Assembly (NCBI GenBank): GCA_964304625.1
Contig: OZ199840.1
Coordinates: 1,838,532 to 1,902,531 of the forward strand
Source of the DNA: Kudoa neothunni
Taxonomy: Eukaryota; Animalia; Cnidaria
Direction: 5' to 3'
DNA length: 64,000 bases
Position 1 is the stretch's first letter. Each line of letters begins with the position of its first letter. Below the pieces are notes generated by a model, which worked only from the letters and a program-made list of their open reading frames with translations, was not told the DNA's origin and made no database searches. This document shows positions 5,884-64,000 of the stretch, piece after piece. Both the position numbers and the translations under genes were made by a program.

Positions 5884-8800
5884 ATGTCGTTCAGCTCAGA
5901 TAATTCCTTGACACCGGTGAAGGTATTTGATTTTATTTTGCGATTTCGCTCGAAGAACAAAACCAAAAATTCAGTAGCTCACTGAGTTATAGATCTACTG
6001 ATCGTATCCTGCTCGTTTAATACGTATCTAATGTTTAGGTTTATTGTCGAATAAAACCTCACCACAGCTCGAACGGCGAGAGATGTGTGAACTTTTTAAA
6101 TTCCACACAAATTGAGTTGATAGTACCATCCACAAAGGTAGATAAAGACAGGTTGGTGGTTGTGTAATCGAGTCATTAATCAATATAGGATTATTCCTAT
6201 AAAGATAAACCAACAATAGTGGCTGATTTCACACGCGTATTTCCAGCTGCCGACAGTCAGCGTTGTCTGTTTGTCGAAGTGGGTTATCCACTAATTAAAA
6301 AGCTTATCCACGGTCAAAATGGATTGTTGTTCGCGTATGGAGTAACCTGCTCCGGTAAGACCCACACACTCACCGGAAATGCTGAAAACCCTGGCATAAT
6401 TCCTCAAGCCATTTCCACAGTGTATCGATCGTTATCCACCAGTCTTGTGCCCAAAGAAGTAATTTGATTGCAGTTGTTAACCATGAAGTAAATCCATACA
6501 TACATACATACATAGACTATTTATATCGATCAAGAGAATAACGTTGTTCAGGATCAACGCCGATCATCAATCTATTTGATTAGAGATGAACTATTTCCAG
6601 TGTATTTCTTGTGATTACGTTGTGTGTGTGTGTGTGCATAAGGTTGATCGAATTAATTTGGTTAGAAATACGGATGTGGTTGGTCAATGGTTGATTCAGG
6701 ATGATGTCACAAAAGTTGAGCTGGTGTGTGTTTGATTTTTTGGCGTATCTAAACAAATCTAGATCGATGAATTCTCCCGTTACGCTATTTTTATATCCTA
6801 TATCGAAATATACAATGGCAAAATATACGATTTGTTGTCATCGAAAAGCAAAAACTACGATAGGTAGAATTCGCGACGTTAACCAATTCAAATGTAAGCG
6901 TTATACTTGTCCACCTTAGGTCATTGCTTAAAACACTGCGCGACTACTCACTCGGTAAAAGCATATTCTCAGAATGTGAGTATCAAATGAACACCGTGGA
7001 GGAGGCTCTTTCGGCTTATTTACATGGTGATTAATTAAATTCAAATTATTCATTGTTTTCTACGTGTAAAATTAGCTCAAAATTTCAGAAAATTTGAAAA
7101 AACCGGCCTCAACAAAAGTAGCAGTAGAGGTCATGCTATTTTTACCATAAGGATTGTTCGATTGGAAGATGGAGTTCTTGTAATGGTGAGCTTTTATAAT
7201 TTGGTGACGTTTTACCCTCTCACTAATCACATACAAATTGCCATTATTAATGAGAATTTTAAAATAAATAGGAATACTCACAATTTATTTAATTTTTAAT
7301 TATCCTAACGATAATTATTCAAGATGATTGGATGCATTTTAATCTAGAATAGCTACAGTAGAAATTGTCTATTGAATTGCGTAAGTATAGTTCCGAGTAT
7401 AAATTAGCTATATCTATTCCCAAGATATAATTCTAAGATATAAATTCTAAGATATAAATTCTAAGATATAAATTCTAAGATATAAATTCTAAGATATAAA
7501 ATCTAGGATATAAAATCTAGGATATAAATTCTAAGATATAAAATCTAAGATATAAATTCTAAGATATAAAATCTAAGATATAAAATCTAAGATATAAATT
7601 CTAAGATATAAAATCTAAGATAGATATAAATTCTAAGATATAAAATCTAAGATAGTGAAGATTAAAACGCCGATCTTTATATTTGTTTATTTTGAAAATA
7701 AACGGTGTTTAACTCCTAGATAGATGTAGGGAGAATTAGGGCAAGTAAAAAATGCGTGCTAGCTAGATATTTGATTTTACAGTAGACAACCAATTTTATA
7801 TAACCCCTTTTGAACCGTGAAAAAGTGTAAAATCAAAGCCAATCAATTTATTAGTGCATACGCGAAACTATTAGTATGCTTTTTTATGGAGCATAAAAAA
7901 ATTGGCGGTCTTTTTACTGCCAACGTATAAATGAACTAGAGTTATATTACAGAAAAAATAGGTGATCTTTAGTGTCATTTTTGAAAAAATCAGTTATTTT
8001 GGATTATTTTATATTTTGACTCACTATATCGTATGTAAATCAATATGCAATTGTGATAATTTTCGAAACCGATCTAAACGATTTTTTAACTTTTAACTGG
8101 TGGGAAATTTTGATCTTTCTTTTTTCTTTGGAGAAAACATTATTCGAGTTGCTGTGTTTGATATGTTGGAATGTGTCACAATAGCTTTCTTTTAATTTTT
8201 TAATGAGAAATTTGTAAATATTTCGTATTGTCTATTTTAACTTTATATTGGCATATTTCTAAATTTTCTGGGAATAATGATATATCGATTAACAGTTTAA
8301 AAAAGTGCTAAAAAAGTGCTAAAAATCGACAGGCCATGCGATTTTTAGTATATATTTTTCATCATTTACGGTTAATTATGTAAATGATGTAGATTAACAT
8401 TGAGAATATTTCCAATTACAATCGAACCTCGATTATCCTGAAGATATTTGAATTTTTGGTTGAATTTGATTGAAATAACATTTTGATAAATGTCCGATTA
8501 ACTGGAAAGAAATCCCAAGCCCCAAGTCTTCCGGATAATCGAGGTTCAATTAAGTAACTTCCAAAAAATGTGTGAAATCGGTTGATGACTGTATTTATCA
8601 TATTCAGTCGACTATGCTTGAAATAGCTTTTTTATTTTCTTATTTTCAATCTTCTTTTCCATTTTTAATTAAGATGTTAGTAATAAGAATAATTATTTAT
8701 GCAAAAAGTGTTTGAATTTCATTGTTAACCCTCTAAGTATAATTGGGGTGGGGTATCTTGGAACCCACGATTGTTTTTCATCTAATTATCCCAAATATTG

Positions 8801-26311: not shown

Positions 26312-27596
26312 TCAATTATATATGATGTTAAGAATGGATAATTTCTTTCGGAATTTTCTACCAAAAGGGTACCTCTTCTTGAAGATATTGTTTTCTATAT
26401 TATCTTTATTCCTCAGTTTCTTAGATTTATCACCTAAAAGGTTATATTATAATTATTATTTAATAGTAAAAGTTTATTTAGAGTAAATCATACTGATATA
26501 TTGATCCGCTTCATAGAAGAAATCAAACTCAACATCAGCCATGGGAGGGGAATCAACTTGAGTAGCCTTCTGTGGAAGATGGGTCCGCTTGACTAACAGC
26601 TGCGGTGGAAACTTCCGTAGTCATAGATACAGTGGAAGATAGTTCGACTTGACTAGCAGCTTCGGTAGGAACTTCCGTAGTCATAGATTCAGTGGAAGAT
26701 AGTTCGACTTGACTAGCAGCTTCGGTAGGAACTTCCGTAGTCATAGATTCAGTGGAAGTGGGCTCCACTGTGACACTTGTAGACGAGGAGGAGTCAACTT
26801 GGATGGCAGTTGTGGACGATGATGCATCTTGATCCTGTGGAAGCACAGGTGTGGAAGAGGAAACCACTTGTTCAGCCAATTCACTTGAACGCATCACAGC
26901 GTGTAATGTAGTGCCACATTTTTTCTCAGAGTCATCAAGACACCAATCACTGTGCTATACAAATGGTAAAACAAGGAAAAATTAATTTCATCACTTTATT
27001 TGGGAAAGATCCGATTTCAATGAAATACCTAAACAAACCGCGTATTTAATGGCCTAGGTCGAATTAGTAATTCTATCGACGTTATAAATTTTTACCACAC
27101 AAACAAATGGTCTTTCATGTTCAAGATAAAAGTTGTGGACTACAATAATTTCGATTCAAAACCAACAAGCTCAAAGCCTGATAATACTTGTGTTTCCGGT
27201 GCAATTTCCATAAAAACGCATTATATCTTCTCTTTTGGGATATATTGCAAAAAGTCTGGATATATCTTCCCACGAGTCCACAATCACTCTACGCTGAAAA
27301 AGGTAGAATCGAAATTATTCCGAATTGTGAATACTTCTGCACCAGATGATTGTGCATTCCAATAAACTCGTGTACCGCGAAGTAGGTCTCCTTTTGCTTG
27401 TTGAGTCAGATTAACCTATGCATTTTTACTGTTTAACAAGTGTAACAAACGTATTATGGATTATAGAAACTTTTGTTTACCCCTGATACTTGAGCGGTAG
27501 ATTCGAAGTTAAATGTGACTAAGAATCATTAAAACATGTGATTTATAATAAGATAGTACAAAGAAAAATTGGACCAAATATCAACATCCAACTCAT
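26312..27596 (-). CDS. Secreted Cys-containing protein B with a Ser/Thr-rich mucin-like repeat tail; frameshift near 26570 gives an early stop at 26553
   Basis: Signal-like MSWMLIFGPIFLFTFNF. Core VNLTQQAKGDLL..IYPKREDIMRFYGNCTGNTIHNFYLEHERPFVCVAIKYAVC..WCLDDSEKKCGTT, then the S/T/E-rich ORF 26553-26897. Confidence 0.75.
26585..26760 (-). repeat. 60-bp coding tandem repeat x3 (STESMTTEVPTEAASQVELS)
   Basis: Sequence lines 26581, 26641 and 26701 repeat at a 60-nt period. Confidence 0.95.
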
Positions 27597-34289: not shown

Positions 34290-35462
34290 TCAATAGGGGA
34301 GATTATTGATGTTATCGATCAGTTTGTGCAGGATAGATTTTTTAAGTTTCAATTGATAATATCTATCTCCACGCTCACCAACGACCAAGTCGATTAAGTT
34401 GTGATCGACAAATTCGACAAGTTGCGAGCGTAGACTTGATTCGTTGGTGGTTAGAAAATTTCTCCTGCAATACTCGTACAATTGGGTGTGGGGCATGTTG
34501 GCGGTGGGGTCGGCGGAGTCCCCCGATGACAACGCAGTTTTGATAATATAATCGAAAATTTGTTGAGCGTTTCTTGTGAGACTTTGGTAGACACACAGTA
34601 CCGAATCGATAATTTTTTTGTTGTTGGCGCCATCTCTATCAGGTTTCAAATCTAGCGCCAATTCCATATCGAAATTTTTCTCCAAATAATTTGTTGCGGC
34701 GATTTCCCGCCAAAAATGTTCCAACGTATTAATTTGGTAGTGCACGAATTGTGTTGAACAAAGAACCGAATAGTAGGATATAGTTGATATGAATTGTTGG
34801 TCATTGTAGGTGGCCATTAGGGAGAACAACGATTTCTCCAATAACAACCTATCAAGTAATAGGTTCAACATATTTTCATTGATGCCAGTAGGAATGTAAT
34901 TTATATTATCGAAAATTAGAAGTGTTTTACGGGGATTCTCCACATCGTCGTTACTTGCGAGCAGCTTGAGATTGTCAAAAAATCTATTCATCATATCGAT
35001 AAACTTTTTCGACGAAACTTTTATCTCATCCACAAAACATTCATCATCCAACACACCATAAATAGCGTTGAGTTGTCGCAATAAATCAAAATAATAAATC
35101 TCCGAGTAGTTATGTCCGTTCATGATCAACACATGATAATTGGTGGTATTGAGTGTGAAGCGTTTGAACGATTGAATCAATGTGTGCTTGGAACCCATGC
35201 CATACACGAAAACAGTTAGGCCATTGTCGACATCACGAATCCATTTGTGGAAATAATCCATGAGGATATTGCTACAATTTTCAACTGTTATAGGTGGTGG
35301 CTGAGTGCGCTTTTTAGCCTTATTTTCCAAATCTTCTGAATAGGTCCTTAACATGTGATGAAAAAATGCGGTTTTCTCCGCCAATTGTATTTCATCCTGT
35401 TCATTACTCTCCTCCTCGTATACAGGAGAGGATAATCTTTGTCTTAACTTATGTCTGGCCAT
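34290..35462 (-). CDS. ORC2: Origin recognition complex subunit 2, intronless, 390 aa
   Basis: YFHKW...VFVYGMGSKHTLI, VLIMNG, LLIFDNI, VYQSLTRNAQQIF and LYEYCRRNFLTTNESSLRSQLVEFVDHNLI are ORC2 signatures. Confidence 0.93.
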   Translation of the reverse strand: MARHKLRQRLSSPVYEEESNEQDEIQLAEKTAFFHHMLRTYSEDLENKAKKRTQPPPITVENCSNILMDYFHKWIRDVDNGLTVFVYGMGSKHTLIQSFKRFTLNTTNYHVLIMNGHNYSEIYYFDLLRQLNAIYGVLDDECFVDEIKVSSKKFIDMMNRFFDNLKLLASNDDVENPRKTLLIFDNINYIPTGINENMLNLLLDRLLLEKSLFSLMATYNDQQFISTISYYSVLCSTQFVHYQINTLEHFWREIAATNYLEKNFDMELALDLKPDRDGANNKKIIDSVLCVYQSLTRNAQQIFDYIIKTALSSGDSADPTANMPHTQLYEYCRRNFLTTNESSLRSQLVEFVDHNLIDLVVGERGDRYYQLKLKKSILHKLIDNINNLPY

Positions 35463-38400: not shown

Positions 38401-40180
38401 ACGGTTTTTATATATTAAACGATAAGTTTCGATTCAAAAGTAATATAAACTGTAAAATATAATTTTCCTTTCCTCAAAATTTATCTGTTCACAATCAATA
38501 TTGATACATTTTGATCTTAAAATATTATACGCTTTGTGTCATTTTATTTCTATTAATAAATTAAAAATTTAAATTAAATGAATAACGATTAAATGTAATA
38601 AAAATTAAGCTCGCGCAGCATCATACGCAGACGCTAATCGAGATTTCACTTAAAAAAATTTCAATCGAATTTTACATTAAAATTAAAGCGAAAAGTAATT
38701 TAGATTAATAGAATTTCTTTATACTTAGAATCTAAATAGATCTGAAAAAAAAATCGTTCGGATACACGGAGTTTGAATATACAAAGTTCTGTGTACTCAC
38801 AATTTTCGGTTGCAATAAACCATGGAAACAACAGTAACTGCAAACTGTGAACAGTTGATTGAGTTTGTGTTGTATTATCTACATATTTAGACATTGCAAA
38901 CCACCAGATTTTAGTTGTTAAGAAATCTTTTAATCTTTACAATTTGTTCTAACTCGTTTATTAACTTAACAATTCAAGGCTTGATGAAAAAACAAAAGTA
39001 TTTTTAAGGCAAATATTTCCATTAAAGCCGTTATCATAAAAATGAAACACCCAATTCTAATTAGAAGAAAAATACCAATGAATCCTTCTAAAATAAACTT
39101 AAATGCGTTTTAACTCTATAATTATCTTTTCGAATTGCAAACTCACCTAATTTAATCAGCGGTTTCTACATAATACAAATATAGCGCTCGTACTTAATTA
39201 AACGTCTGACCTTTAAGACGCATGATACTCAAAAAGCTAAATATTCAATTTTCCACTCTAGAATGTCATCCTAACCACAGATAAGCCATACAAAAATTCC
39301 TCATAGTTTTCAATATTACACAATAATTAGAAAAAAGTATGGCAAATTGGTCAATAATTCTTTTGAAGAGATAAAAAGGGCGCCTATTTATTCAAAAAGG
39401 GAGAATTATAATGACAACCTTTTATAATTCTCAGAAATCAAGTTTCGATATTAAGAAAAATCGTTTAATTTATATTATCTGAATCAAACAAAAAGTCCCA
39501 ACCCAAGGCAATTAAACATCACACGCAACAAGGCATTTAGTTGAGTATGATCACGCTCGTAAACCACGGCATAGATACACGAGCTTAATTCTCGTTAATC
39601 ATAAGTAGTAAACGTATTATAGTCAAGCACGAACGGTGACGTGACAAAAATCTTCTTGAATAGTAAATAAACATTTCACAGCCGCATCAATCATGTGTTT
39701 GTTTACCAACAATCTTTTCAATGGTGTTTTATTCCCAAAAGATTGGTGGATCAGGTAGATTGGTGAAACAGTTATAATTCTTCACAGGCGGAAGAGATAG
39801 GATTATTATTTTAATGCTCCTAATTCGTATATTAAAACCAATATAGTGACTATTAATTATTTAACACATATACAGTCATGTTAAATGATAGATAAAATTA
39901 ATTTCACCGTTGTCAATGACACTCGAGTTCGATGACGAATGTTTTGAGAACAAATTCCATTACGGTTAATTCCCAGTGATTAAATTATAATAAGGCACCA
40001 CGAAAACAAGTTCATAAATTCCTTCATTATTTATTTTACCACTGAAATAGATTCATTAAAATTATTTCATACAGTTAAAACCTTAGAATAATTCTAAATA
40101 GCTTTTGTTGTTGGTATGCGTAAATATTGTCACGCGCTAGCCGCATAAGACTCGTTGGCGCCCGAAAGTTAAGATCGAAG

Positions 40181-41533
40181 ATGAGAGAGTGTATTTCGTT
40201 ACATATTGGTCAAGCTGGAATACAGATTGGTAACGCTTGTTGGGAGTTGTACTGTTTGGAACACGGTTTAACCCCGGATGGCCGTCTGCTGAATGGCGAG
40301 AATAATGGGGTTAGTAAAGACAAGCATGAATTCAGTACCTTTTTCTCTGAGACTGGTTCCGGCAAGTATGTTCCAAGAGCAATTATGGTTGACTTGGAGC
40401 CGTCAGTTATTGATGAGATCCGTTCCACAACGTACAAAGGTTTGTTCCATCCGGACCAATTGATCGCTGGCAAAGAGGATGCTGCTAACAATTACGCCCG
40501 TGGACATTACACCGCCGGTAAACAGGTGATTGATCAGGTTTTGGATCGCACAAGAAGACTCACAGAAAACTGTTCTGGTCTACAAGGTTTCATGATCTAT
40601 AGATCTTTCGGTGGTGGTACTGGTTCTGGATTTTCGGCGTTGCTTTCCGAAATGTTGACATCTGAGTATGGAAAGAAACCAAAAATCGAGTTTTCAGTAT
40701 ATCCAGCACCACAGATATCCACCGCAGTGGTTGAGCCATACAACACAGTTCTTACCACTCACACAGTTCTCGAACACAGTGATGTGACTTTTATGATGGA
40801 CAACGAAGCAATCTATGATATTTGTCGACGCAATCTTGATACTGATCGACCTTCTTACCAAAATCTTAATCGCCTTATTGCTCAAGTTGTATCTAGTATA
40901 ACAGCATCACTTCGATTCGACGGTGCTCTCAATGTGGATCTTAACGAATTTCAAACTAATCTTGTGCCCTATCCAAGAATTCATTTCCCATTGGTCACCT
41001 ACGCGCCTGTTGTATCAGCCCAAAGAGCTCAACACGAACAAATGTCCATATCTGAAATCACCAACGCATGTTTTGAACCCTACAACCAAATGGTCAAGTG
41101 TGATCCCAGAGATGGAAAATATATGTCGTGTTGTTTATTGTATCGAGGTGATATTGTGCCCAAGGACGTCACCACTGCCATCTCCCAAATCAAAGCACGT
41201 AGAACAATTCAATTTGTCGATTGGTGCCCAACCGGTTTCAAAGTGGGTATCAATTCTCAACCTCCTGTTGTTGTACCTGGATCCGAGATGGCCTCAGTTC
41301 CTCGAGCCGTTTGCATGTTGAGCAATACAACATCTATTGCTAGTGCTTGGGCCAGAATCGACCATAAATTCGATCTCATGTACAGCAAACGTGCTTTCGT
41401 TCATTGGTACGTGGGTGAAGGAATGGAAGAAGGTGAGTTCACTGAAGCCAGAGAGGATCTTGCTTCTCTCGAAAAGGATTACGAGGATGTGGCTAGAGAC
41501 TCTGCTGATGAGAGTACTCAAATGGAAGCCTGA
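40181..41533 (+). CDS. Alpha-tubulin, intronless, divergent isotype (450 aa)
   Basis: MRECIS start at ATG 40181, [24 protein letters not shown] and [16 protein letters not shown]. Confidence 0.98.
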
Positions 41534-50538: not shown

Positions 50539-53039
50539 TTAATGAAATAAAAAATACGTAGACAAAAAAGTTAAAAGAACAAAGTAACTTATAATATTAG
50601 TGAATTATTAAACAATCTAATTATTATAATATTTTATTTACTTGAAAATAGAAATTTTTTAAAGCACATCTAAGTATTTTATTAGTTTTAAATGTTCATA
50701 TAGCATTCTTTTTATTTTGAGTCAAAAAAGGTAAAATTGTGGTTAGATATTTGAATAAACCTTAACTTAGTCACTTATCATAACATTTTTATTGTGGCTG
50801 GTGATTTAAAACGCAAATAAAATGTAATAACCAACTTCACTTTAAACTTCTAATAAAATTTGAATGTGCATCTGAAAACCACAGGTAATACTCAATAAGA
50901 TTCAGGGAAATGTTAAAAAATCAGGACGGAACCAAAAAAGAATCATCAAGTTTAATTAGTCCCATTCCCATTGTGATTGAAATATTTAGGTTTACCAAAT
51001 TAATATTTCAACTATGAGATTATGACAAAAAAATTAAATCAAAAAAGCTTGTTTACAAAAATTCTGGCCATATTTTAATTCCATTTAACATTATATGAAC
51101 CAAACAATCAATTTAAACGAAAACATCAACTAAAAAGACAACGGTCAAATAGGAATTATTAAATTTCAATTGAGTGCAGAGGATACACACGAATTAGTCC
51201 ACTCCATCACATCCTTGTCAACCTCATGTTGGATTACTTTTCCGTTTGCGTTGATCCATGGGCCGACGTTTCTAAAAGCGGATTTAGATTGATGACAAAC
51301 GAAAAATAATTGAAAAATGTATACTTTTTAAAAGTGAGCTTATTGACTTTATTCAACTGTTTACATTTGAAAGTGACATGCAAAATATATGTGGCAGTTA
51401 GAGAATCAAAATCTGAAGCTACGACCCATGAGTATTTTTTATCCTTACCAGGGAAAAAATTGAAAAACGTCACATAAATTTAAATATACTGAGAGTTTTA
51501 AATCTTTTTCATTGCAAAAAAGTATGTTATGCTTCAGTATAAAGTGCTCGTATAACGTTGTGATGATGTAGGTTGTGAAAAATCTAAAACACAATTCTCT
51601 CATTTTCTCACAACCGAACAACGCTGCTAGATTACCCAACAAGACATGGAACAGTGTATTGCTTTGCTGAATCATAACCATACTTTCTTTCATAGCAGAA
51701 TAATGAACCGCAAATAACACATGCGATTATTCGAAATAACAACCTAATATCAAATTGGATATGCGACGCAACACATTTTCGTTTATTGACAAATGCCTAA
51801 ATTCATTTCACATGGAATTGATGAAGACCGGCAGATTACTAAAATGACTGCATCATCTAATCCATTTTTCACAGAACTTTTTTTGTATTTGGATACGAGA
51901 ATTTCGACGTTTTTCATTGTGGGGTATCAAGTGTTCGGTTAAGTTCGCGGAGTATCGACTAAGGTTAGTGACTAGGCTTACTTCATATTTTTGGATTTAC
52001 AACCAGCCATATTGTTTAGTAATTATTATAATTATATTCTCATAGAAACTTATGTAATTCTCGTTCGAAATATTAAGATGAACAGTAAAAAATGCGCTGA
52101 TATGATTTTATCATAGCGATATTTATCGATGACTCAGTTAATAATTTGATTGTGATTTATTGGTAATTAATTTTATGAAAAGTACTTAGGATCGCTATAT
52201 TATTTTACATAAAGAAAATATTATATAATTTATATGTGACCTTCGTAAAATATAAGGAGTCTTCTCACACTTTCTTGTTGATATTATTTAGTGAATCAAT
52301 CACCATTAATGTGGGCAAGCAGCGGGTTGATTTTAAAAATTGCCGAGCCTTGTTTCTATTGTGTAATCAAAAAAAACCAAAAATACTAAATATTAAAGAG
52401 AATCATGTTGGCTACTAGTGGATTAATATAAGTTTATATTCGTTTCATAATATTCGGATTTAGCGCTTAAAATTCTATTTAGTCAATTTTTAATATTTTT
52501 AATACTGTTAAAGTTTATGACATTATTTTTGAAAATTCAAACTGAATAAATTTTATTTTCCATAACTATAGATCTAAATGTATTCTCACTTTCAGAGTTA
52601 AAACGACGTAGCTGGTGTAATAATCTCTTTGTTATACATAGAAAGCTACTATAAAAAAAAATACGATAACAATGAAAAAATTAAAATTTCCGTTTTATGT
52701 CATTTTATAGACTATTGTTCAAAGCGAATTATTTATAAAATAGAAATTTTTATAATAAAATTACACAGGCTCCATTTAAGTTACAAACAAATTTATTACA
52801 TACTTTGATTGTATATTAATTTTAAAAAGTAACATAATATCTCTATATATTTCTAAAATCATTGTTTTTAGAACCTCCAGAAATTAAAATATGTAATATG
52901 TGGATTTAATTAATCCACAAAAAATATTATATTGTATTTTTTACCCAAAACTACATAACAAGTATGTTTTTTGTTAGTGTCGCCAAAGAATAGAGACCAA
53001 TATAATGGCGAATAATTTAATTGAATTAGAGGTAATGGT

Positions 53040-55611
53040 GACCGTATTAGTAAACAGAAGTTAACCCCGTCGTATTAGTTAGAATAACGATAACTAATTA
53101 ATAATTAAGGATATCAGCGCGCCCAGCTGTTTGAATGTGATAATGTAGGTCCATGATAAATAATGTCTATGGGGATCATAACAGTTTTTACATTTATTTT
53201 TGTTTTAGGAAAAATATTATTTTCAGATAAATAGATAATATTAAAATTAGAATTAGAATTTAAGGAAGTGAGGAACATCGTTAATAATTTTTGTTAAGAT
53301 TTCTAATACTATTTTAGTAGAGTCAATAATGACTTGAATATTTTTAAAATATATATTCCACAATTATAACCAAATAAACGAGTTAAAATTGATTGATTCA
53401 CCATAGATTTATTCAATTAGGTGGGATATATTATAATTATGTAAGATTAATTATAGTAAAAATATTCCGCTAACATTCCTACAAAAACAATTATTTTCGT
53501 TAAATAAAAAATATTTGAAATTATTATTATTATTGTTTTTACTATAATAATATAATAGTAAATCATCAAAATCTACTCTAGTTAGTATAAATTAATCTTC
53601 TATGAACTTCTCTAATTTCTATTTTTCCAGTAACCAAAGTAGAAACCAATTCCGATAAAAACGATAGCAGCTGGAACTACAACTGCAACAATTCTAAATG
53701 CAATAATTAAAAAAGTAATTCCAGGTTACTTTACATCGAATTTTTAGATCTAAATAAATGTATAATGATATTCACGTATTAAAATTACGTTGATTTATTC
53801 GAGGCTTCACCTATATTTATTAATAATATTCAAATTATTGAACATTTGATACAACAATAAAAATAAGCTACCCTGATTTATTTCCCCGATTCCATAGATA
53901 CTTTCGTTTCCACTAACAAATACCGCTAAGTGATAATTGTTGATGTCTTCGACCTCGGTAATGGTGAATTCATTGCATGGAGGAAACACCCTACAACCTT
54001 CACCAACTGTCATGCATTTTTTTATGATCGGATTAGACATATCCTCCGAATTTGTTAATTTCCATTTGCATAACGAATTTGAATTCACGCCTTCTGGCAG
54101 TGTTGTTTTTACATTTAAAGTTTTGTCAACACGTGTGATCACCACTGTTATTTCCTTTTTAGGGTCCGAAGGAGATTTGAGAAGTGGGTCTAATTTAACC
54201 TTCGTTATTAAACTAGTAAATTACATTTATAACATAATTCATTTATTAATAAATTTGGATAATTTTTTTCAAAAGGTATATTTATTCGTAAATAAAGATA
54301 TAATTTTAGATGAAACATTACTTTTAGGTATATCTATTGTAACTTCAATAGACCTGTCGACAGCCGTCACTAAAACCTGATATTCCTTTTCTGCTTCGTA
54401 TCCTTCACTGAATACGATATTGCTACATAAAGGCAATGTTTGACAAGTAGGGATTCTGGTGTTGGTAGTTGTAGGTGTTACATTTGTTGATTGTTTGTCC
54501 GCCGATCTAGCCACTCCTATTTTAGAGAGTATTGATTTTGCAGGAGCACTTCCAGTATTTACTACTGGAGGCGCAGCAGGGCATTCGTATATTGAATCAT
54601 ATGATACGCCTCTCTTAACTTTTATTTTGTAATGACAAACGGCCGTTGGATATGGCAATGATAATGAACCTATCACTTGGAAACCTTTGTCCAAAAATTT
54701 CTTTTGAAGTGTAAGCGTTGACATTTCTTAATAATTATTTATTTAATTTCAAATAAGCATTTTGTTACTTGTGGTAATTTGATGAACTTTAAAACCGTAA
54801 CCAGTGTGTGCAACTATCTTGAGATCATACTCCGTTCCTGGACTTAATCCCACAATAGTTTGAGGTTCTCTACAATATCCTCGGCAAGGATAACTATCTG
54901 AACACATTGCACATACATAAACGTCCTTCCCTCTAGGACTAAGATAGTAAGCACAGGTGATATCTTCTTTGGAAGCTACGGCTGCAACCTCAAGTGCTTT
55001 TATAGTGAAACTTGTATCACGTATGGTTGGTGTAACGTCGGGAAATGTAGTTGCTCCGGCATTTTCTAAATAATTCTAAGCTTTTAATTAACGATTTATT
55101 TATACTTGTTCTGAAAAATATATGCTCTTTAAATTCGGAAGGAACTTCGCCTGCTGAAGATGTTGCTGTCGCCGCTTTTATTTCAAGAATATACGGTTTC
55201 CCACTTGCTAATTGTAGTATTGTTAATGCTGCAGTACATGCATCAGTACAAGGATTGGTAGCAGCAGTACATTTAGCTCTTGTAGTAACAGCAGTTGGCG
55301 TGGGTTTATCAGCGGCATAGTAACTTAAGGTACATGTTGTAAATTTGGGCGCTGTAGATGGTGTAGATGGATTAAATAAATGCACATTTAATGTAACACC
55401 AGTAGATGAGTCAGCTGATAATAATTCACCGGTACCGTTTTCAGCAATAGTTTCAGTAATCACTATATATATATTTGATTAGATTATTATTACTCATTTA
55501 ATACCAAATTTCTTTTGTTTGTAACCCTCGTAATCGGTACCAGCAGTATTTTTTTGTAGTGAGAAATGTCTTGTTTGTATCAATATTTCAACAACGCTTT
55601 TAGAATTTGTG
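53040..55611. repeat. Segmental tandem duplication, copy 1 (matches about 61385-64000, offset about 8.35-8.39 kb)
   Basis: ORF pairs 53807/62199, 54269/62661 and 55017/63409. Introns and the 3' flank also align. Confidence 0.97.
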
Positions 55612-56607
55612 AAAATAAGCTCCACATTATTGCATGGGGCAAAACATGGTTTCTCTGTCCCTCCACAATTCGACGTATATTCATTAGAAGAACTACTGCT
55701 AATTTGAGTTGATATTAGTTTAATTCCAAACCGGCAAATTTCAAATGGAAATTTGTTTGTGAATTTTAATAAGTATTTAGTTTTCTCGGTGTTGCTGTAC
55801 GTCACATAATACTGTGGTATATAGACACCGGTGTTCATCAAAGTATATTTATTTTGCAGTTTATAAAAGAAACTTGGATAACCCGCGCATCTCATTTCAT
55901 AATGTGGTATCATTACATCAAATTCTACTTCATTGGCACTATTATTGTCAATACAACTATCCCCAACTGTTCCTGCGGCATATTCAACATTCTTGTAATA
56001 TATGGGGCATGCAACTGGTTTACATGTTTTCGTATTTAATTTCAATTTTTTATCTCCTGTAATAATTATTGACACTTGCGGGTTTACCAATAGTGCTATA
56101 AATATTGTTTTAAAAATTAAAACAAGAGAAATTTACGTATTTCAAATCCAAAGACTGTTCCACCAGTAGATTTTTGAGCAGCTCCTGTAACATCATTTGC
56201 GTCAAAAATTTCAATATATTTCGTTCTTGGTGAAAATTCACCAAATGTTAATTTTATATTATTTCCGTTGCATGCCAACACACACTTACCATCTGGAGAA
56301 TCGGTTTCCTTTCCAGAACAAGAGCTGATATCTGCGTAGGCTGCACCAGCCTCATTTGATATTTTAATGTAGCATTTGTTTGTAGAAGAGTAACTTCCTC
56401 CACTAAATGTTAAATGGACTTTCATATCAGCACTATCTTTAAAAATTCTGTAAGATAGAGAGTTCGCTGTCGCCGTTGAAGTAGCGCCCTGTCCTTCAGC
56501 ATTTAGCAAAAATTTGACTATTACCAAATTAAAAATATTTCAAAATAGTGAAAATTTTTACAATTAAGGATGAGAAAAATTCCAAGGAGTCTTATAAAAG
56601 GAGTCAT
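53612..56607 (-). CDS. Type I membrane surface protein with tandem four-Cys FN3-like modules, copy 1 (10 exons, 837 aa)
   Basis: Exons 56607-56562, 56517-56137, 56095-55505, 55462-55106, 55065-54769, 54726-54322, 54189-53872, 53810-53789, 53749-53735 and 53693-53612 join in frame (2514 nt), all GT-AG. Signal MTPFIRLLGIFLILNFKFLLNAEG; FN3-like GLSPGTEYDLKIVA; transmembrane segment IIVAVVVPAAIVFIGIGFYFGYW; tail KNRN. Confidence 0.85.
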
Positions 56608-58854
56608 TTTATTTGAGATAATCCATTCCGACAGTTATTGTTCAATTCAATAAATCTAATACAATACAACCCCTGAGTTCGAACGTCTCGGAACTCGTAC
56701 AAGTCGGAATTTGATCTAAAATTTTGAGTCAGAAACATTTTTGAATTCGAACACATATAGAAGGGGTATTCAGAATAAATCCAGTTGGAGAAAAAACTAG
56801 AGAAGAAAAGAAATTCCCGAAGGAAATTCGCTCAGTCAAGTGTACGAACGTCATCGAAAGAGAACACATTACAGACGATGACGAGTGGTTCGTAACTTTC
56901 GAAAATATGTAAAAATTAGAAATTACAGAGGAAATAAATTATTAAATTTTACTTCAAAATACACATTAGAGTAAACACATTAAATGTAAAAAAATATAAG
57001 CTGTTTAATAATTACACGTTTGTAATTTTCCCTTATTTTTTTTAACTGACGTGTGGTTAGTAACTTTTCGGGGAACAAACATCCAGTTTTTTCTGTAAAA
57101 ACCATTTATTGAAGATGGAAATTCAAAATGATGTTAAATCTATTTCAGAAAAATAAAAAATAAACAATCATTTTGACAGTCAGTCAAAAGCAGAGGAAAA
57201 ATCAAGAGCTACAAAACTTTTCAATGCATCATCCATATTTACATTGTTTTATCTATACACAGTAGATAACCGATTTTCCGTAGTGTCCGATTTTCGGTAA
57301 CTTCGAAATTTCTCCATTAGAATATTGTTTTAATATTTTAAACCATATATTTGATTGTATTTTTAGGCTTTAATAACAATTTACATAAATTTTAAAAATT
57401 GGACATCTATAAGTGGGGTTTATCACATTATTAGCGCTTAACCGATTTTCCGTAACTCTTCAGCTCTAGGCCGATTTAGTGGTGCGCCTTTTTTTACATT
57501 TGCAATGTCTGAAAAAATTGAAAATGAGGAAACAATAAAACTTAAGTATAAATTTATTGATTATTTTAATAGCATACTAAACAGGAGTGCAAAAATACTA
57601 CTTTTAGTAAATTTAAGCTCCTTTCTATTTCTACTCTAGATATCATCTTGATTATGAAGAAAGATATAGTTTTATCTTATAAACTGGCTTGGCTTCTTCG
57701 GAGAGGAAAAATTTTAAACAGTGTTAAAAAAACGAAATCGATACTATAGTATATGACTGGGTGAATTATTTGAGATACAACAATTTAACTGTCTGATCAT
57801 GATATCATACACGAAAGAAACCAATTGACAAAAGAATTGAACCTAAACGTTGTAATGATCCATGATTGATTTGTTGGTTTTAAATCACGATTTAATTTAA
57901 CAATATCACTGCCCATGGTGATGCTGTTTATGTTGACTAAAGTTATGCAGAAAATTGGTAATCTAAATTGAATGATCTAGTCAAAGGTAACAACGATGGC
58001 TGTATATATAACCATAACAAAATTTCATTATTTTAGCAGAGACTAAGAGGTCCATTATTTTTACTGCTATGTTTTGTCGGGAGAAAAAAATCTAAAAAAT
58101 AGTTACTGGTTTGCTGCATACATCTACCTGGAGATTTCATTGAATCTCTTGTGATTGGAAATCACAAAAACCACGTTGTTTTAAAAATGCTAAAACATTT
58201 ATAGTAAAATACAAATCAAACTGGAAAGAATGGATAACTAGGGAACCATTTATCAAATATTTTTCTAATTTTGACAATGTATTCAAAACAAAGTACAAGA
58301 AAGTTTAATACTTCTTAATAATGCCACTTGCCACGTCGAAATTCATTTGTCCAATATCTCTCATATATTCCTTACGAAAAATTCAACTAGCGTTTTTCAA
58401 CTATTAGACCATGGAATCATTTTCTCATTCAAATCAAATTACGAAAATAATTTAAAAGAAAGACATATTGCTGCAGTTGGCAATGATATAAATACATCCT
58501 CTCAAAATTCGCTTAATACATTGTTCCTAATCATAAATAATGGGATGGTGTTTCAAAGGATATTGTATTTAATTGTTTCAGAAAATAAGAGTTTCCTGCA
58601 GCCAATGAATGCAAGATTTCATCAAATATTAATGTTGGCAATAAAGAATTTTCGGCTGGAAATAGTGAGATTATTTAGAGGAAGTCATTATGCCTACATC
58701 AAAACATTTTGACGAGCTTACACCTTTGAATATTGAATCTGCTAATTTTGAAACTGAAGATGAACGAGTGGTAGAAATTATATCATCAAAAGATGTACTT
58801 AAATGTTTAAAAAGCAGAATAAATATACGACAGAGAGGAATTGATTATCTAGAC

Positions 58855-61160
58855 CAGTGGTTCTTAACCTTTTGGGAGTGGCCGAACCACTACTACCTTG
58901 TAGCACGCCTCGTCGAACCTCCAAACATAAAATTTTTTAAATTTTAAATAAATTGAATTATAATCTAATCAATATTTGGCACATCATAAAAATTGCAACA
59001 TTTAAAAATCAAATTAATATAAAGCTAATTAATGTGATTTTTGTTCTTGTTTTTTTGCAGCCAATTCCGAAATACGAGGCAAAATGTTGGAGAGAGCAAT
59101 TCGCATATCGCTTTCACAGAAAAGCTTATTTTTTAACTAATTTATGGTGACCGATCTTGAAAATGATCGTTCGCAAAGGTAAGTTGTTACGAAATAAATA
59201 AGAACTTCCAAAGCCTTCATCGAAATTGTAGGATATTTCTCAATTTGATTTATCCAAAAGATTGATGGTGAAATTTTTTCGAAAGGTTGTTTTTGAGTTA
59301 TGTTGCGTTGAAGTTCGATTAGTTCATCATGGTATTTATTATTGGCATCCTCAGCTAAATTATCGAAACTAAATGGTTGCTTCACCCAGACGGGGAATGA
59401 ATTTTAGAAGGGAATAACCATCGAGTAAGTTAGAAAGTTCTTCTAAATGTGCAGAAATTATTTCCTTTAATTCAAAAAGTAAAATGACCAATTCGTTATT
59501 ATCGCTGCCATTAATATTACAAATATCGTCTAAAAGTGGAAAGTTTGCATAATTGTCGACCATTAATCTTCGTTTGTATAAAGATAATTTTATTTGGAAT
59601 GCACTAAGACACTCCTCTGCCTCAATGATGTTGACTCCATTTCCTTGCATCTGCAGGTTCGAACAATTTATGGAATCAAAAATATCAGCCATGTATGCCA
59701 AAAGAAGAGTAAATTCAAAATTACTGAAACATTGAGTATGACAATGGTTACACTCCAGCAAAAATATACCTATTTCCTTCCGCAGGGTAAAAACTCGGTT
59801 TAATACTTTTCCTCGAGACAACCACCTCACATCTGAATAAAATAAAAGTATATCAAATTCAGAATCCATTCCGTTGCACAAATATATGAAGATTCGATGA
59901 TTCAAAGAACTACTTCTCACAAAATTTACACAATCGATAACGATTTTCAACACTTCTGCCAGCCTTGGAGGCATATTCTTTGTTGCTAATGTATATCTAT
60001 GGAAAATGCAATGCGTAACAGTAATGAGGTGCATCTAATTTCACAAGAGCACGAAAGCCAGAGTTGGGCTTCAGCATAGCTGGGGCACCATCAGTACAAA
60101 TAGAAGAAACCATATTCCATGAAAGTCCATTGTCTTTGAAAAACTCATCGACAACTTTCTTAACATCCACTGCCTTGGTAGTTGTTAAAGGTTTGCAAAA
60201 AAGAAAATCCTCAACTATCACACCATTTTTCAAATATCTAACAAACGAAACCAGTTGACTTAGGTTTGAGATATCAGTAGTTTCGTCGAATTGTATACTA
60301 AACTTTGCTTTACTTGAAATTAGATCCAAACTTAATTGATCCAAAATGTCTTTATTCATATCATCAATTCTTATCTTAACGGTATCATTTGACAAAGGAA
60401 TTGTTGCTAATTTTTTTTCTGCAATACTTCCCAATAAAATATTTGTCATCTTCAACGCGACAGGCTTAACGAGCGTGTCACCAATATTGTGAGGTTTGCC
60501 AATTAGATACGAAACTTCATATGTTGCTGTTAAGATAGGCTTATCAATATTAACAAATCCAAAATTTCGCAACGTAGATCTTTCATCACACTTTTCTCTC
60601 TTTGCTTCAAGTTCAGAAAGAGTCATATTCCTAAATGCAGAGTCTCCATGGACATTCGTGAAATGTTCCTTTAATTTTGCTGGTACCAAACTGAAATTAC
60701 TTAACTTCGAGTTGCATATCACGCAAAGAGGTCCTTGAATACCACTAAGTTCTGTAACATAGGTAAACCCGAACTGTACAAAATCATTTGACTACTTTCT
60801 TTTTTTGTTTAAACATTCAAAGGGCCAATATTTATTTCCAGTAACCCTCACAAAACTAGAAAACAAACAACACTGCCACGCAATAAACTCTGTAACCCGT
60901 TACACTTGATTGTATTAATAAGATAAATCTTAAAGAATTTCAAATACTCGAAGAATAATTGAAATTAAATTATCAATAATTTTTTAATTTATCACTATTA
61001 TCTTTTTAATAGAGCTTCTATTAGGATTATAAATACAACCAATAGAAGGTTTATTTAAAATATTAATATTATAAAGAATATTAATCGTAGATTTGATTTA
61101 AAATTTGGAATTTTTTGACCGAACTCTGGGGTTCGGTCAAACCCAGGTTAAAAACAACTG
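58855..61160 (-). mobile_element. hAT transposon, Buster/Charlie (ZBED8/SCAND3-like) subfamily
   Basis: Perfect 8-bp TSD ATCTAGAC (58847-58854 and 61161-61168). TIR CAGTGGTTCTTAACCT / AGGTTAAAAACAACTG. Confidence 0.95.
59137..60816 (-). pseudogene. hAT/Buster transposase pseudogene
   Basis: FGFT..PLCVIC, QFDETTD, CTDGAPAM, HCIFHR, RWLSRGKVL and TTYLCERSFS. Frameshifts near 60030 and 59385; early stop near 60793. Confidence 0.92.
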
Positions 61161-62009
61161 ATCTAGACAAAATAATGAGTTAACATCATAAAATTACGAC
61201 ATACACATTAAAAAATATAATTACGAATAACATATAATAACATACTATTTCAATAAAAATAGATTATTGTATAAATGAAATTAATTTCTTTAAAATCGAT
61301 TTATTTTTATGTTATTGCGCGCAGAAAGCTACGTAAAATCGTTTACGTATTGTAGTAACAATTAATGTAAGTGAACTATGGTTGATAATGAACGTATTAG
61401 TAAATAGAATTTAACCACGTCGTATTAGTTAGAATAACGATAACTAATTAATAATTAAGGATATCAGCACGCCCAGCTGTTTGAATGTGATAATGTAGGT
61501 TCATAATAAATAATGTCTCTTGGGATCATAACAGTTTTTACATTTATTTTTGTTTTAGGTGAAAATATTATTTTCAGATAAATGGATAATATTAAACTTA
61601 AAATAAGAATTAGAATTTAAGGAAGTGAGGAACATCGTTAATAATTTTTGTTAAGATTTCTAATACTATTTTAGTAGAGTCAATAAAGATATGGATATTT
61701 TTAAAATATACATTCGACAATTATAACCAAAAAAACAAGCTTAAATTAATTGATTTACTGTAGATTTATTCAATTAGATTGTATGTATTACAATTATGTA
61801 AAATTAATTTAAATTGTAATTCGTCTAATTTTTTAATAAAAAATTGTAGCAAAAATATTCCGCTAAAATTCCTACAAAAACAATTATTTGCGTTAAATAA
61901 AAAATATTTGAAATTATTATTATTGTTTTTTACCATAATAATATAATAGTAAATCATCAAAATCTACTCTAGTTAGTATAAATTAATCTTCTATGAACTT
62001 CTCTAATTT

Positions 62010-64000
62010 CTATTTTTCCAGTAACCAAAGTAAAAAACCAATTCCAATAAAAATGATAGCAGCTGGAATCACAACTGCAACAATTCTAAATGCAATAATT
62101 AAAAAAGTAATTCCAGGTTACTTTACATCGAATTTTTAGATCTAAATAAATGTATAATGATATTCACGTATTAAAGTTACGTTGATTTATTCGAGGCTTC
62201 ACCTATATTTATTAATAATATTCAAATTATTGAACATTTGATACAACAATAAAAATAAGCTACCCTGATTTATTTCCCCGATTCCATAGATACTTTCGTT
62301 TCCACTAACAAATACCGCCAAATGATAATTGTTGATGTCTTCGACCTCGGTAATGGTGAATTCATTGCATGGAGGAAACACCCTACAACCTTCACCAACT
62401 GTCATGCATTTTTTTATGATCGGATTAGACATATCCTCCGAATTTGTTAATTTCCATTTGCATAACGAATTTGAATTCACGCCTTCTGGTAGTATTGTTT
62501 TTACATTTAAAGTTTTGTCAACACGTGTGATCACCACTGTTATTTCCTTTTTAGGGTCCGAAGGAGATTTGAGAAGTGGGTCTAATTTAACCTTCGTTAT
62601 TAAACTAGTAAATTACATTTATAACATAATTCATTTATTAATAAATTTGGATAATTTTTTTCAAAAGGTATATTTATTCGTAAATAAAGATATAATTTTA
62701 GATGAAACATTACTTTTAGGTATATCTATTGTAACTTCAATAGACCTGTCGACAGCCGTCACTAAAACCTGATATTCTTTTTCTGCTTCGTAACCTTCAC
62801 TAAATACGATATTGCTACATAAAGGCAATGTTTGACAAGTAGGGATTCTGGTGTTGGTAGTTGTAGGTGTTACATTTGTTGATTGTTTGTCCGCCGATCT
62901 AGCCACTCCTATTTTAGAGAGTATTGATTTTGCAGGAGCACTTCCAGTATTTACTACTGGAGGCGCAGCAGGGCATTCGTATATTGAATCATATGATACG
63001 CCTCTCTTAACTTTTATTTTGTAATGACAAACGGCCGTTGGATATGGCAATGATAATGAGCCTATCACTTGGAACCCTTTGTCCAAAAATTTCTTGTGAA
63101 GTGTAAGCGTTGACATTTCTTAATAATCATTTATTTAATTTCAAATAAGCATTTTGTTACTTGTAGTGATTTCATGAACTTTGAAGCCGTAACCAGTGTG
63201 TGCAACTACTTTGAGATCATACTCCGTTCCTGGACTTAATCCCACAATAGTTTGAGGTTCTCTACAATATCCTCGGCAAGGATAACTATCTGAACACATT
63301 GCACATACATAAACGTCCTTCCCTCTAGGACTAAGATAGTAAGCACAGGTGATATCTTCTTTGGAAGCTACGGCTGCAACCTCAAGTGCTTTTATAGTGA
63401 AACTTGTATCACGTATGGTTGGTGTAACGTCGGGAAATGTAGTTGCTCCGGCATTTTCTAAATAATTCTAAGCTTTTAATTAACGATTTATTTATACTTG
63501 TTCTGAAAAATATATGCTCTTTAAATCCAGAAGGAACTTTGTTAGAACCCGAGTCAGTCGCCGCTGCTTTAATTTCAAGAATATAAGGTTTTCCGCTTGG
63601 TAATTGTAATATTGTTAATGCTGCATTACACTCCTCAACACAATGTTGGTCACTAACAGAAGCAGTACATTTAGCTCTTGTAGTAACAGCAGTTGGCGTG
63701 GGTTTGTCAGCAGCGTAATAACTTACAGTGCATGTTGAAAATTTTGGCGCTGTAGATGGATTAAATAAATGCACATTTAATGTAACACCAGTAGATGAGT
63801 CAGCTGATAGTAATTCTCCAGAACTACCTTCAGCAATAGTTTCAGTAATCACTATATATATTTGATTAGATTATTATTATTCATTTAATACCAAATTTCT
63901 TTTGTTTGTAACCCTCGTAATCAGTACCAGCAGTATTTTTTTGTAGTGAGAAATGTCTTGTTTGTATCAATATTTCAACAACGCTTTTAGAATTTGTGAA
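62010..64000 (-). CDS. Type I membrane four-Cys FN3-like surface protein, copy 2 (5' part lies beyond the window)
   Basis: Same exon-intron structure as copy 1. Exon 63851-63498 is strongly diverged. An extra A at 62032-62037 shifts the last exon to ...GIGFLLWLLEK* (stop 62010-62012; the position equivalent to the copy-1 stop is 62003). Confidence 0.85.

Follow-up and report, generated by a model that had tools for sequence, protein, structure and literature searches.

We analysed a stretch of 64,000 nucleotides (hereinafter, the window) from the assembly GCA_964304625.1, filed under Kudoa neothunni and comprising 40.26 Mb in four contigs; the window lies on contig OZ199840.1 (here, C3:1838532-1902531) and is AT-rich, with about 29% G+C. 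Towards its right end, it carries two tandem genes, A and B, and a third copy, C, is situated just before its start. All three are mosaics: segments that are almost identical between the copies alternate with segments that have diverged much further at silent sites, and trees built from different segments are incongruent. We consider it probable that this mosaic originated from repeated gene conversion between clustered paralogues, in the course of which diverged islands were retained. The genes belong to a very large, lineage-restricted family of predicted single-pass surface proteins.

Mosaic structure of genes A, B and C

Gene A, as read from the sequence, occupies positions 53612-56607 on the minus strand. 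It is composed of ten exons: e1 (56562-56607), e2 (56137-56517), e3 (55505-56095), e4 (55106-55462), e5 (54769-55065), e6 (54322-54726), e7 (53872-54189), e8 (53789-53810), e9 (53735-53749) and e10 (53612-53693). All of the exon borders are AG/GT, exons 2-7 are of phase 1-1, and 837 codons can be read without interruption between start and stop; the exons were searched individually, with their joining limited to a reading-frame count. Exon 1 encodes a hydrophobic, signal-peptide-like N-terminus. At the 3' end, two micro-exons of 22 and 15 nt are followed by an exon with one transmembrane (TM) helix, after which a tail of about five residues remains.

Gene B, delimited by a three-way alignment and by extension past the window end, is also found on the minus strand. 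Its in-window part (62003-64000) includes e10 (62003-62085), e9 (62127-62141), e8 (62181-62202), e7 (62264-62581), e6 (62714-63118), e5 (63161-63457), e4 (63498-63851) and e3, which runs from 63892 to 64482 and thus ends beyond the window, where e2 (64524-64910) and e1 (64955-65000) follow. Every splice site is retained in gene B, and a T6 run in its e10 has one extra base, leading to a different two-residue tail after the TM helix. The comparison was extended by 10 kb on either side of the window, and copy C was found on this extension at window positions -3540 to -114, 56 kb distant from the A/B pair. Its gene (-3161 to -167) shows a frame conflict at the exon 1/2 junction, beside a T8 run, and reads CAG at the position of the stop codon; about 2.4 kb of exons remain open. 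Copy C is either a young pseudogene or carries homopolymer errors.

Every copy is complete as a gene: it possesses a start codon, a signal peptide, a TM exon and a stop of its own (except for the CAG of copy C), along with a single exon 4. A Dscam-like reading with alternative exons was considered and rejected, since there are no mutually exclusive exon arrays and each copy is a whole gene with a single exon 4. The simple reading of A and B as allelic haplotypes was rejected as well, both being whole genes with unrelated flanks.

Self-comparison of the window revealed a single long direct repeat, 53039-55613 versus 61389-64000, reaching the window end. With the extension included, the duplicated block on the minus strand covers 53039-56661 in copy A and 61389-64000 in copy B, the latter running on for 1054 nt beyond the window to 65054. 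Across most of these 3.6 kb, copies A and B are 99-100% identical; the pairwise alignment of 53449-55613 with 61842-64000 shows 95.3% identity overall, and over 3.2 kb, A is 93% identical to B and 90% to C. The differences are packed into the exon 4 interval: A-B bins from 55450 to 55107 hold 54 mismatches and 17 gap columns, whereas elsewhere there are 0-5 mismatches per 50 nt, mostly 0-3. The divergent core of exon 4 (minus strand, 55135-55439 in A and 63527-63828 in B) includes four variable patches, one of which is a 9-nt tandem duplication, and displays about 18-20% raw nucleotide divergence along with two in-frame indels of 9 and 6 nt. The first 23 and the last 29 nt of the exon are identical in A and B, while introns 3 and 4, which flank it and measure 40 nt each, are nearly so. 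At the protein level, the two exons 4 are 81% identical, with all four cysteines kept and 24.5 synonymous differences; non-synonymous A-B changes number two in exon 5 and one each in exons 6 and 7. The original prediction had reported near-identity of exons 5-9 and the introns, as well as an exon 4 that differs in four patches, keeps its cysteines and has in-frame indels and many silent changes. Self-comparison and alignment bear out the former, and the latter holds at the residue level.

A second old block is located at the 5' end of the gene (minus strand, 56055-56661 in A and 64442-65054 in B). This block, 15-22% diverged, starts 55 nt upstream of the ATG, takes in exons 1 and 2 with introns 1 and 2, and stops 40 nt into exon 3. 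The copies had originally been described as differing by one hypervariable exon. Such a description covers only what fits in the window: the exon 1-exon 2 block is equally diverged, and exon 4 is homogenised in another paralogue pair (see below). The 3' flank (53039-53452) is 9% diverged between A and B, and past both ends of the duplicated block, the two sequences are unrelated. As a separate observation, the promoter regions of B and C share about 380 nt at 74% identity, and that of gene A, beyond -55, bears no relation to either.

Synonymous divergence (dS), estimated per exon according to Nei and Gojobori (NG86), follows the same partition. Between A and B, dS is 0.41 in exon 2 and 0.37 in exon 4, compared with 0.11 in exon 3, 0.08 in exon 5, 0.055 in exon 6 and 0.046 in exon 7. 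For exon 2, the ratio of non-synonymous divergence (dN) to dS amounts to 0.46; for exon 4, it is 0.34 (dN 0.13). The dS of exon 2 against copy C is about 1.0. Since silent-site divergence is high and introns 3 and 4 are near-identical, the divergent exons are old at silent sites and not merely fast at replacement sites.

Probable exchange between the copies and the extent of the family

Several tests indicate exchange between the copies. In an alignment of A, B, C and two next relatives with 891 polymorphic sites, a Sawyer-type permutation test found identical tracts longer than expected by chance: the longest runs were 79 polymorphic sites for A-B, 61 for A-C and 44 for B-C (p <= 0.0005 each). 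The three-way profile and the site patterns show that the pair in agreement changes from block to block, being A=B, A=C or B=C; for example, A equals B and is unlike C at 55562-54911, while A equals C and is unlike B at 55962-55936 and 54818-54668. One breakpoint falls inside exon 4 itself, at 55194-55216 of the minus strand (max-chi-square test, 5000 permutations, p = 0.0004). In the 5' two-thirds of the exon, A goes with B at 33 sites versus 10, and in the 3' third, it goes with C at 17 versus 6.

The per-exon trees, proposed earlier as a check, disagree between segments, and synonymous divergence is not uniform. Exons 3, 5, 6 and 7 place A, B and C in a tight clade, while exons 2 and 4 give long and poorly resolved branches. 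It is also important to note that exon 2 of gene A is nearer in DNA to two genes located at distances of 175 and 250 kb (identities of 76% and 79%) than to copy C (69%). Taken with the dS contrast, the Sawyer-type test and the breakpoint in exon 4, such incongruence upholds the earlier proposal that an old divergent segment sits within flanks homogenised by segmental gene conversion.

A whole-genome DNA search found nothing more than 72-74% identical to exon 4 of A or B outside the A-B-C trio, and for exon 2 of gene A, the best genome match after B reached only 79%. Import from an extant donor is not supported, because the genome holds no closer copy of either exon.

The family to which these genes belong is extensive. 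A protein query with exon 3 gave at least 150 scored matches (E <= 6e-51) among 473 candidates on the three large contigs, and a query with exon 4 gave at least 150 scored among 301 candidates. These counts correspond to at least 150 paralogues and up to 473 candidates, distributed in many arrays that are mostly distant from chromosome centres. Stops are present in 7 of the 150 scored exon 3 copies, and the other 143 are open; because so few contain stops, an archive of broken donors appears to be absent. The cassette-type exchange suggested by the original prediction finds no backing here: for A and B alike, the best potential donors of exon 4 or exon 2 in the genome reach no more than 72-80%, and nearly all of the scored copies are open. 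Cassette-type antigenic variation, or programmed antigen switching, is not supported.

The exon plan was the same in all of the 20 further paralogues that were retrieved. Exons 2 and 4 were always the least conserved, with amino acid identities to A of 38-70% and 38-77%, respectively, versus 65-96% for exon 3. Pairs from within one cluster showed dS values of only 0.05-0.2 in exons 5-7, as against 0.3-0.8 in exons 2-4. In one other paralogue pair, exon 4 was homogenised as well (dS 0.11). From the dS values of other clusters and from this pair, it follows that we are dealing with a general gradient, a variable tip on a homogenised base with stochastic tract edges, and with no rule particular to exon 4.

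Relatives of the family outside this genome are few. A HMMER search of exon 3 against 1.84 billion representatives gave only 15 matches, the best being 51% identical, and the nine that were looked up are nameless singleton clusters on short ENA or Logan contigs. One match is on a 7.3-kb eukaryotic Logan contig, where exon 2/exon 3-like open reading frames (ORFs; about 31% identity) adjoin genes for SNF5 and a ribosomal protein; such a neighbourhood on a eukaryotic contig indicates that relatives of the source organism carry the family. A word-indexed search with exon 4 in an index of 5.8 billion proteins gave no match, exact look-ups of the exon 4 ORFs of A and B found none on record, and an ESM Atlas feature search with exon 3 returned no usable match. 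The literature search found no fitting description of a family of this kind either, in line with the original impression that no described family is involved.

Predicted modules and the evolution of their loops

The protein is predicted to consist of a signal peptide, about seven four-cysteine beta-sandwich modules resembling fibronectin type III (FN3) domains, a short stalk encoded on two micro-exons, a TM helix and a tail of about five residues. There is one module per phase-1 exon and two in exon 3. An AlphaFold model of exon 4, built from 27 paralogous sequences, has seven strands, with a predicted local distance difference test score (pLDDT) of 71 and a predicted template modelling score (pTM) of 0.63. 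In Foldseek, all of the 50 listed PDB matches were FN3 domains except for one axonemal chain at rank 46. They included 10Fn3/monobodies, contactin, Robo, DCC and the insulin receptor (TM score 0.5/0.6, probability 0.8-1.0, E 0.04-0.2). With modest confidence, the model thus presents exon 4 as a seven-strand sandwich of FN3 topology. The model of exon 3 (pLDDT 82) shows a pair of sandwiches in tandem and has matches of the cytokine-receptor type at E = 6e-5.

In sequence searches, the likeness to FN3 is faint. Pfam searches with each exon gave fn3-type matches that were all sub-threshold: exon 5 matched PF00041 at E = 0.0036 and 17.9 bits against a gathering cut-off of 25, and in the exon 4 set, 7 of the 27 members matched fn3, all under the cut-off (best E = 0.0023). 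A PDB profile search pointed to titin FN3 (E = 0.026). Between the modules themselves, the exon 4 and exon 5 profiles align with the four cysteines in register (hhalign, E = 4e-4), and exon 2 aligns weakly.

Variation is found mainly in the loops. Outside the predicted strands of exon 4 lie 22 of the 25 A-B residue differences, and family-wide column entropy is 1.47 bits there versus 0.84 within strands (p = 0.005). Columns with under 60% consensus were treated as variable; being selected for variability, they bias dN/dS upwards. Even so, their dN/dS was 0.67-1.1 among A, B and C, with a median of 0.93 over 66 family pairs, and for loop columns, it was about 0.9 (range 0.7-1.6). Framework columns had a dN/dS of about 0.08, and dS was similar in the variable and framework classes. 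As to composition, S, T, P, A, G and N abound in the loops. The ratio in variable columns requires no more than relaxed constraint, and it neither demonstrates positive selection nor contradicts it. Of the earlier suggestion of complementarity-determining-region-like loops under diversifying selection, one part stands, since the variable patches do fall in predicted FN3-like loops; the other part does not, the loop dN/dS being about 0.9 and not above 1.

Origin of the mosaic and its biological context

Gene conversion between clustered paralogues could have shaped the mosaic in the following way. Conversion tracts of roughly 0.1-1 kb would homogenise the introns (3 and 4 among them) together with exon 3 and exons 5-10, while the exon 4 core and the exon 1-exon 2 block retain a much older divergence. 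Both of these islands encode mostly predicted loops, which change at a near-neutral rate and carry indels. They may have become too diverged for whole-segment conversion, or conversion there may be selected against; short tracts would still move within exon 4. Certain points weigh against such a scenario. A mechanical barrier and selection both stand as reasons for the persistence of the islands. The dS contrast comes from NG86 estimates, which on 84 synonymous sites are noisy. Sawyer-type tests respond to rate heterogeneity too; this reading of the result is disfavoured by the synonymous and intron sites.

Read coverage bears on the question from both sides. The stretch was recovered in only four runs, which all derive from a single sample, and depth was taken from the contigs of one run. 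The single-copy left flank stands at 6.3-7.9, two-copy segments at 13-16 and three-copy segments at 17-30, so that the homogenised parts have 2-3 times the single-copy depth, as real multiple copies predict. However, the exon 2 block of gene A (exact match) has a depth of 3.7 and the intergenic contig adjoining A's 5' block has 3.8, so that, relative to single-copy depth, this block reaches about 0.55. In the sole sample containing the stretch, exon 4 of A is almost uncovered over its 5' half (1.13), and at 55464-55493, 55749/55755 and 55936-55962 (intron 3 and exon 3), only B-type letters occur in the reads. Hence the assembled mosaic may represent one haplotype or may partly be a product of polishing. 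As for the B-type letters, they could stem from haplotypes in the sample that carry another mosaic, from a tandem copy confined to one haplotype or from inter-paralogue polishing. Contig depth confirms several copies, of which copy A may be haplotype-specific. Raw reads from three runs filed under the same species label, one of DNA and two of RNA, included none from the stretch; for this reason, the label on the runs probably belongs to a host or to a mixed sample.

The half depth and the B-type letters, together with the fact that the frame-changing differences in B (T6 run) and C (T8 run) sit in homopolymers, are what an assembly artefact would lead one to expect, whether by mis-joined haplotypes or by polishing with reads that fit more than one of the near-identical paralogues. 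Nevertheless, we regard such an artefact as very improbable overall. The flanks of A and B are unrelated on both sides, which argues against alleles of one locus, the reads reproduce A's exon 2 block exactly, and the homogenised parts have multi-copy depth. Moreover, the same kind of mosaic is seen in the third copy and in many other clusters, and polishing noise would not give in-frame indels with the cysteines and the framework kept. Since the flanks are unrelated, a third copy is present and the pattern is family-wide, an artefact is unlikely to underlie the main pattern; for small patches, it is possible. Mis-joined haplotypes had been named at the outset as a way to overturn the finding: flanks and multi-copy depth speak against them, and the half depth at A's 5' block speaks for them.

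A different scenario would see A and B as recent duplicates, about 9% diverged, in one of which exon 4 and the exon 1-exon 2 block were replaced from distant, possibly silent, donors. The 3' flank 53039-53452 (9%) is indeed less diverged than the exon 4 core (about 18-20%) and the 5' block (15-22%); silent copies may exist, given the frame problem and the lost stop codon of copy C; and A's promoter region beyond -55 is unlike those of B and C. However, outside the trio, no copy exceeds 72-74% identity to either exon 4, or 79% to A's exon 2, so that two donor losses would be needed. Moreover, the 7 stop-containing copies among 150 do not amount to a fragment archive, and the exchange partners within exon 4 are A, B and C themselves. 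In our opinion, there is hardly any chance that such an import took place.

The islands could also be kept by selection. In that case, the family would be a variant surface or recognition repertoire whose distal modules (exons 2 and 4) are held different by diversifying or balancing selection, while conversion evens out the modules next to the stalk and recombines short pieces of loop sequence into new variants. Exons 2 and 4 are the most variable family-wide, and their variation resides in loops with indels on a strictly conserved four-cysteine framework (dN/dS about 0.08). The sub-exon mosaic in exon 4 and the large size of the family, at least 150 mostly intact copies in arrays, would fit as well, and the genome seems to have been carried along in a sample that bears the label of another species, as one would expect of a symbiont or parasite. 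On the other side, the loop dN/dS is about 0.9 although the columns were chosen as variable, so relaxed constraint suffices, and dS is equal in loops and framework. The loops are S/T/P/A/G-rich, one patch is a 9-nt tandem duplication, and exon 4 was homogenised along with its neighbours in one other paralogue pair. We therefore consider this explanation rather doubtful.

Some further features of the window and of the genome were noted. Between genes A and B, there is a degenerate remnant of a hAT-type transposase (59369-60722, minus strand) in two overlapping ORFs, matching DUF4371 (PF14291) at E = 1.8e-5, below the family cut-off. Upstream of gene A, the region 57234-58800 has 39-127 times contig depth in one run and, judging by this depth, is a high-copy repeat. 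An intronless alpha-tubulin gene (40127-41533, plus strand) is unusually divergent, being about 75-77% identical to the animal alpha-tubulins listed. An intronless ORF of 390 amino acids (34290-35462, minus strand) has insect ORC2 as its sole database match (22% identity, E = 2e-7) and illustrates the extreme sequence divergence of this genome. In the self-comparison, short tandem repeat arrays appeared at 7398-7654 and 26568-26758, with periods of about 14 and 60 nt. Elsewhere in the genome, the only three nuclear-receptor DNA-binding domains found are in tandem within 10 kb (C1:10296485-10306767); these zinc fingers identify the source as an animal. Searches for the domains of nematode cuticle collagens and arthropod cuticle proteins gave no match, but the accompanying control gave none either, so that this is weak evidence. 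On the whole, the genome is that of a fast-evolving, genome-reduced animal to which the protein databases offer no close relative. Contig C4 (18,219 nt) has 42-45% G+C versus about 29% in the window, and its first 10 kb contain no tRNA and no Rfam match; this contig is not recognisable as a mitochondrial genome and may be foreign.

Concerted evolution with divergent islands is known in tandem multigene families such as MHC, KIR and plant NLR clusters. As in those, neighbouring paralogues here are homogenised along most of the gene, seemingly by conversion, while loop-coding (there also ligand-facing) segments have diverged. Trees from different segments conflict with one another, and the edges of the tracts are situated in conserved sequence. 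However, our family is another one, with a fold of its own, and the islands described here have a dN/dS of about 1, in contrast to the clear replacement excess at peptide-binding or LRR residues in those families. Variant surface families of parasites also diversify by segmental conversion, as in the cases of Babesia ves1, Plasmodium var/rif, trypanosome VSG and Giardia VSP. Common to them and to our family are large size, lineage specificity, clustering, predicted surface location, mosaic exchange and conserved membrane-proximal parts. Unlike them, our family is found in an animal and not a protist, and its genes are full-length and mostly intact; a donor archive or an expression site was not seen here.

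Invertebrates possess allorecognition and immune-type arrays of their own, for instance, Hydractinia Alr, Botryllus fuhc, snail FREPs and Dscam. Here, the likeness consists in predicted type I membrane proteins made of beta-sandwich modules, with a variable membrane-distal part and genomic clusters. Still, the modules of our family are FN3-like with four cysteines and not V-set Ig. Unlike in Alr-like receptors, the tail, about five residues long in A and two in B, contains no signalling motif, and unlike Dscam, each gene has one exon 4 without alternative-exon arrays. With FN3 (PF00041), our modules share the predicted seven-strand sandwich and, in some members, weak sequence matches to fn3 or titin FN3. 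No member reaches the Pfam cut-off, however, and the four conserved cysteines, together with a long cysteine-bracketed insert between strands, are non-canonical.

Overall, the pattern that drew attention to this locus has an ordinary population-genetic explanation and does not in itself point to a new mechanism. It is tempting to suppose, though we would put it forward only as a tentative idea, that the family serves as a variable surface coat or host-interaction repertoire of a fast-evolving, genome-reduced animal living inside another species, the loop diversity of exons 2 and 4 being selected and re-assorted by short-tract conversion. If so, it would be an animal counterpart of the protozoan variant-antigen families, and the half depth and the letters of the "wrong" type would be due to mosaics that vary between haplotypes. 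Should the family indeed be what its sequences suggest, this animal would spend a few per cent of its 40-Mb genome on a single, unannotated set of surface proteins, variable at the tip and homogenised at the base. This would be a strong pointer to how the organism meets its host or partners, as well as a clean natural example of gene conversion and divergence partitioning a modular gene.

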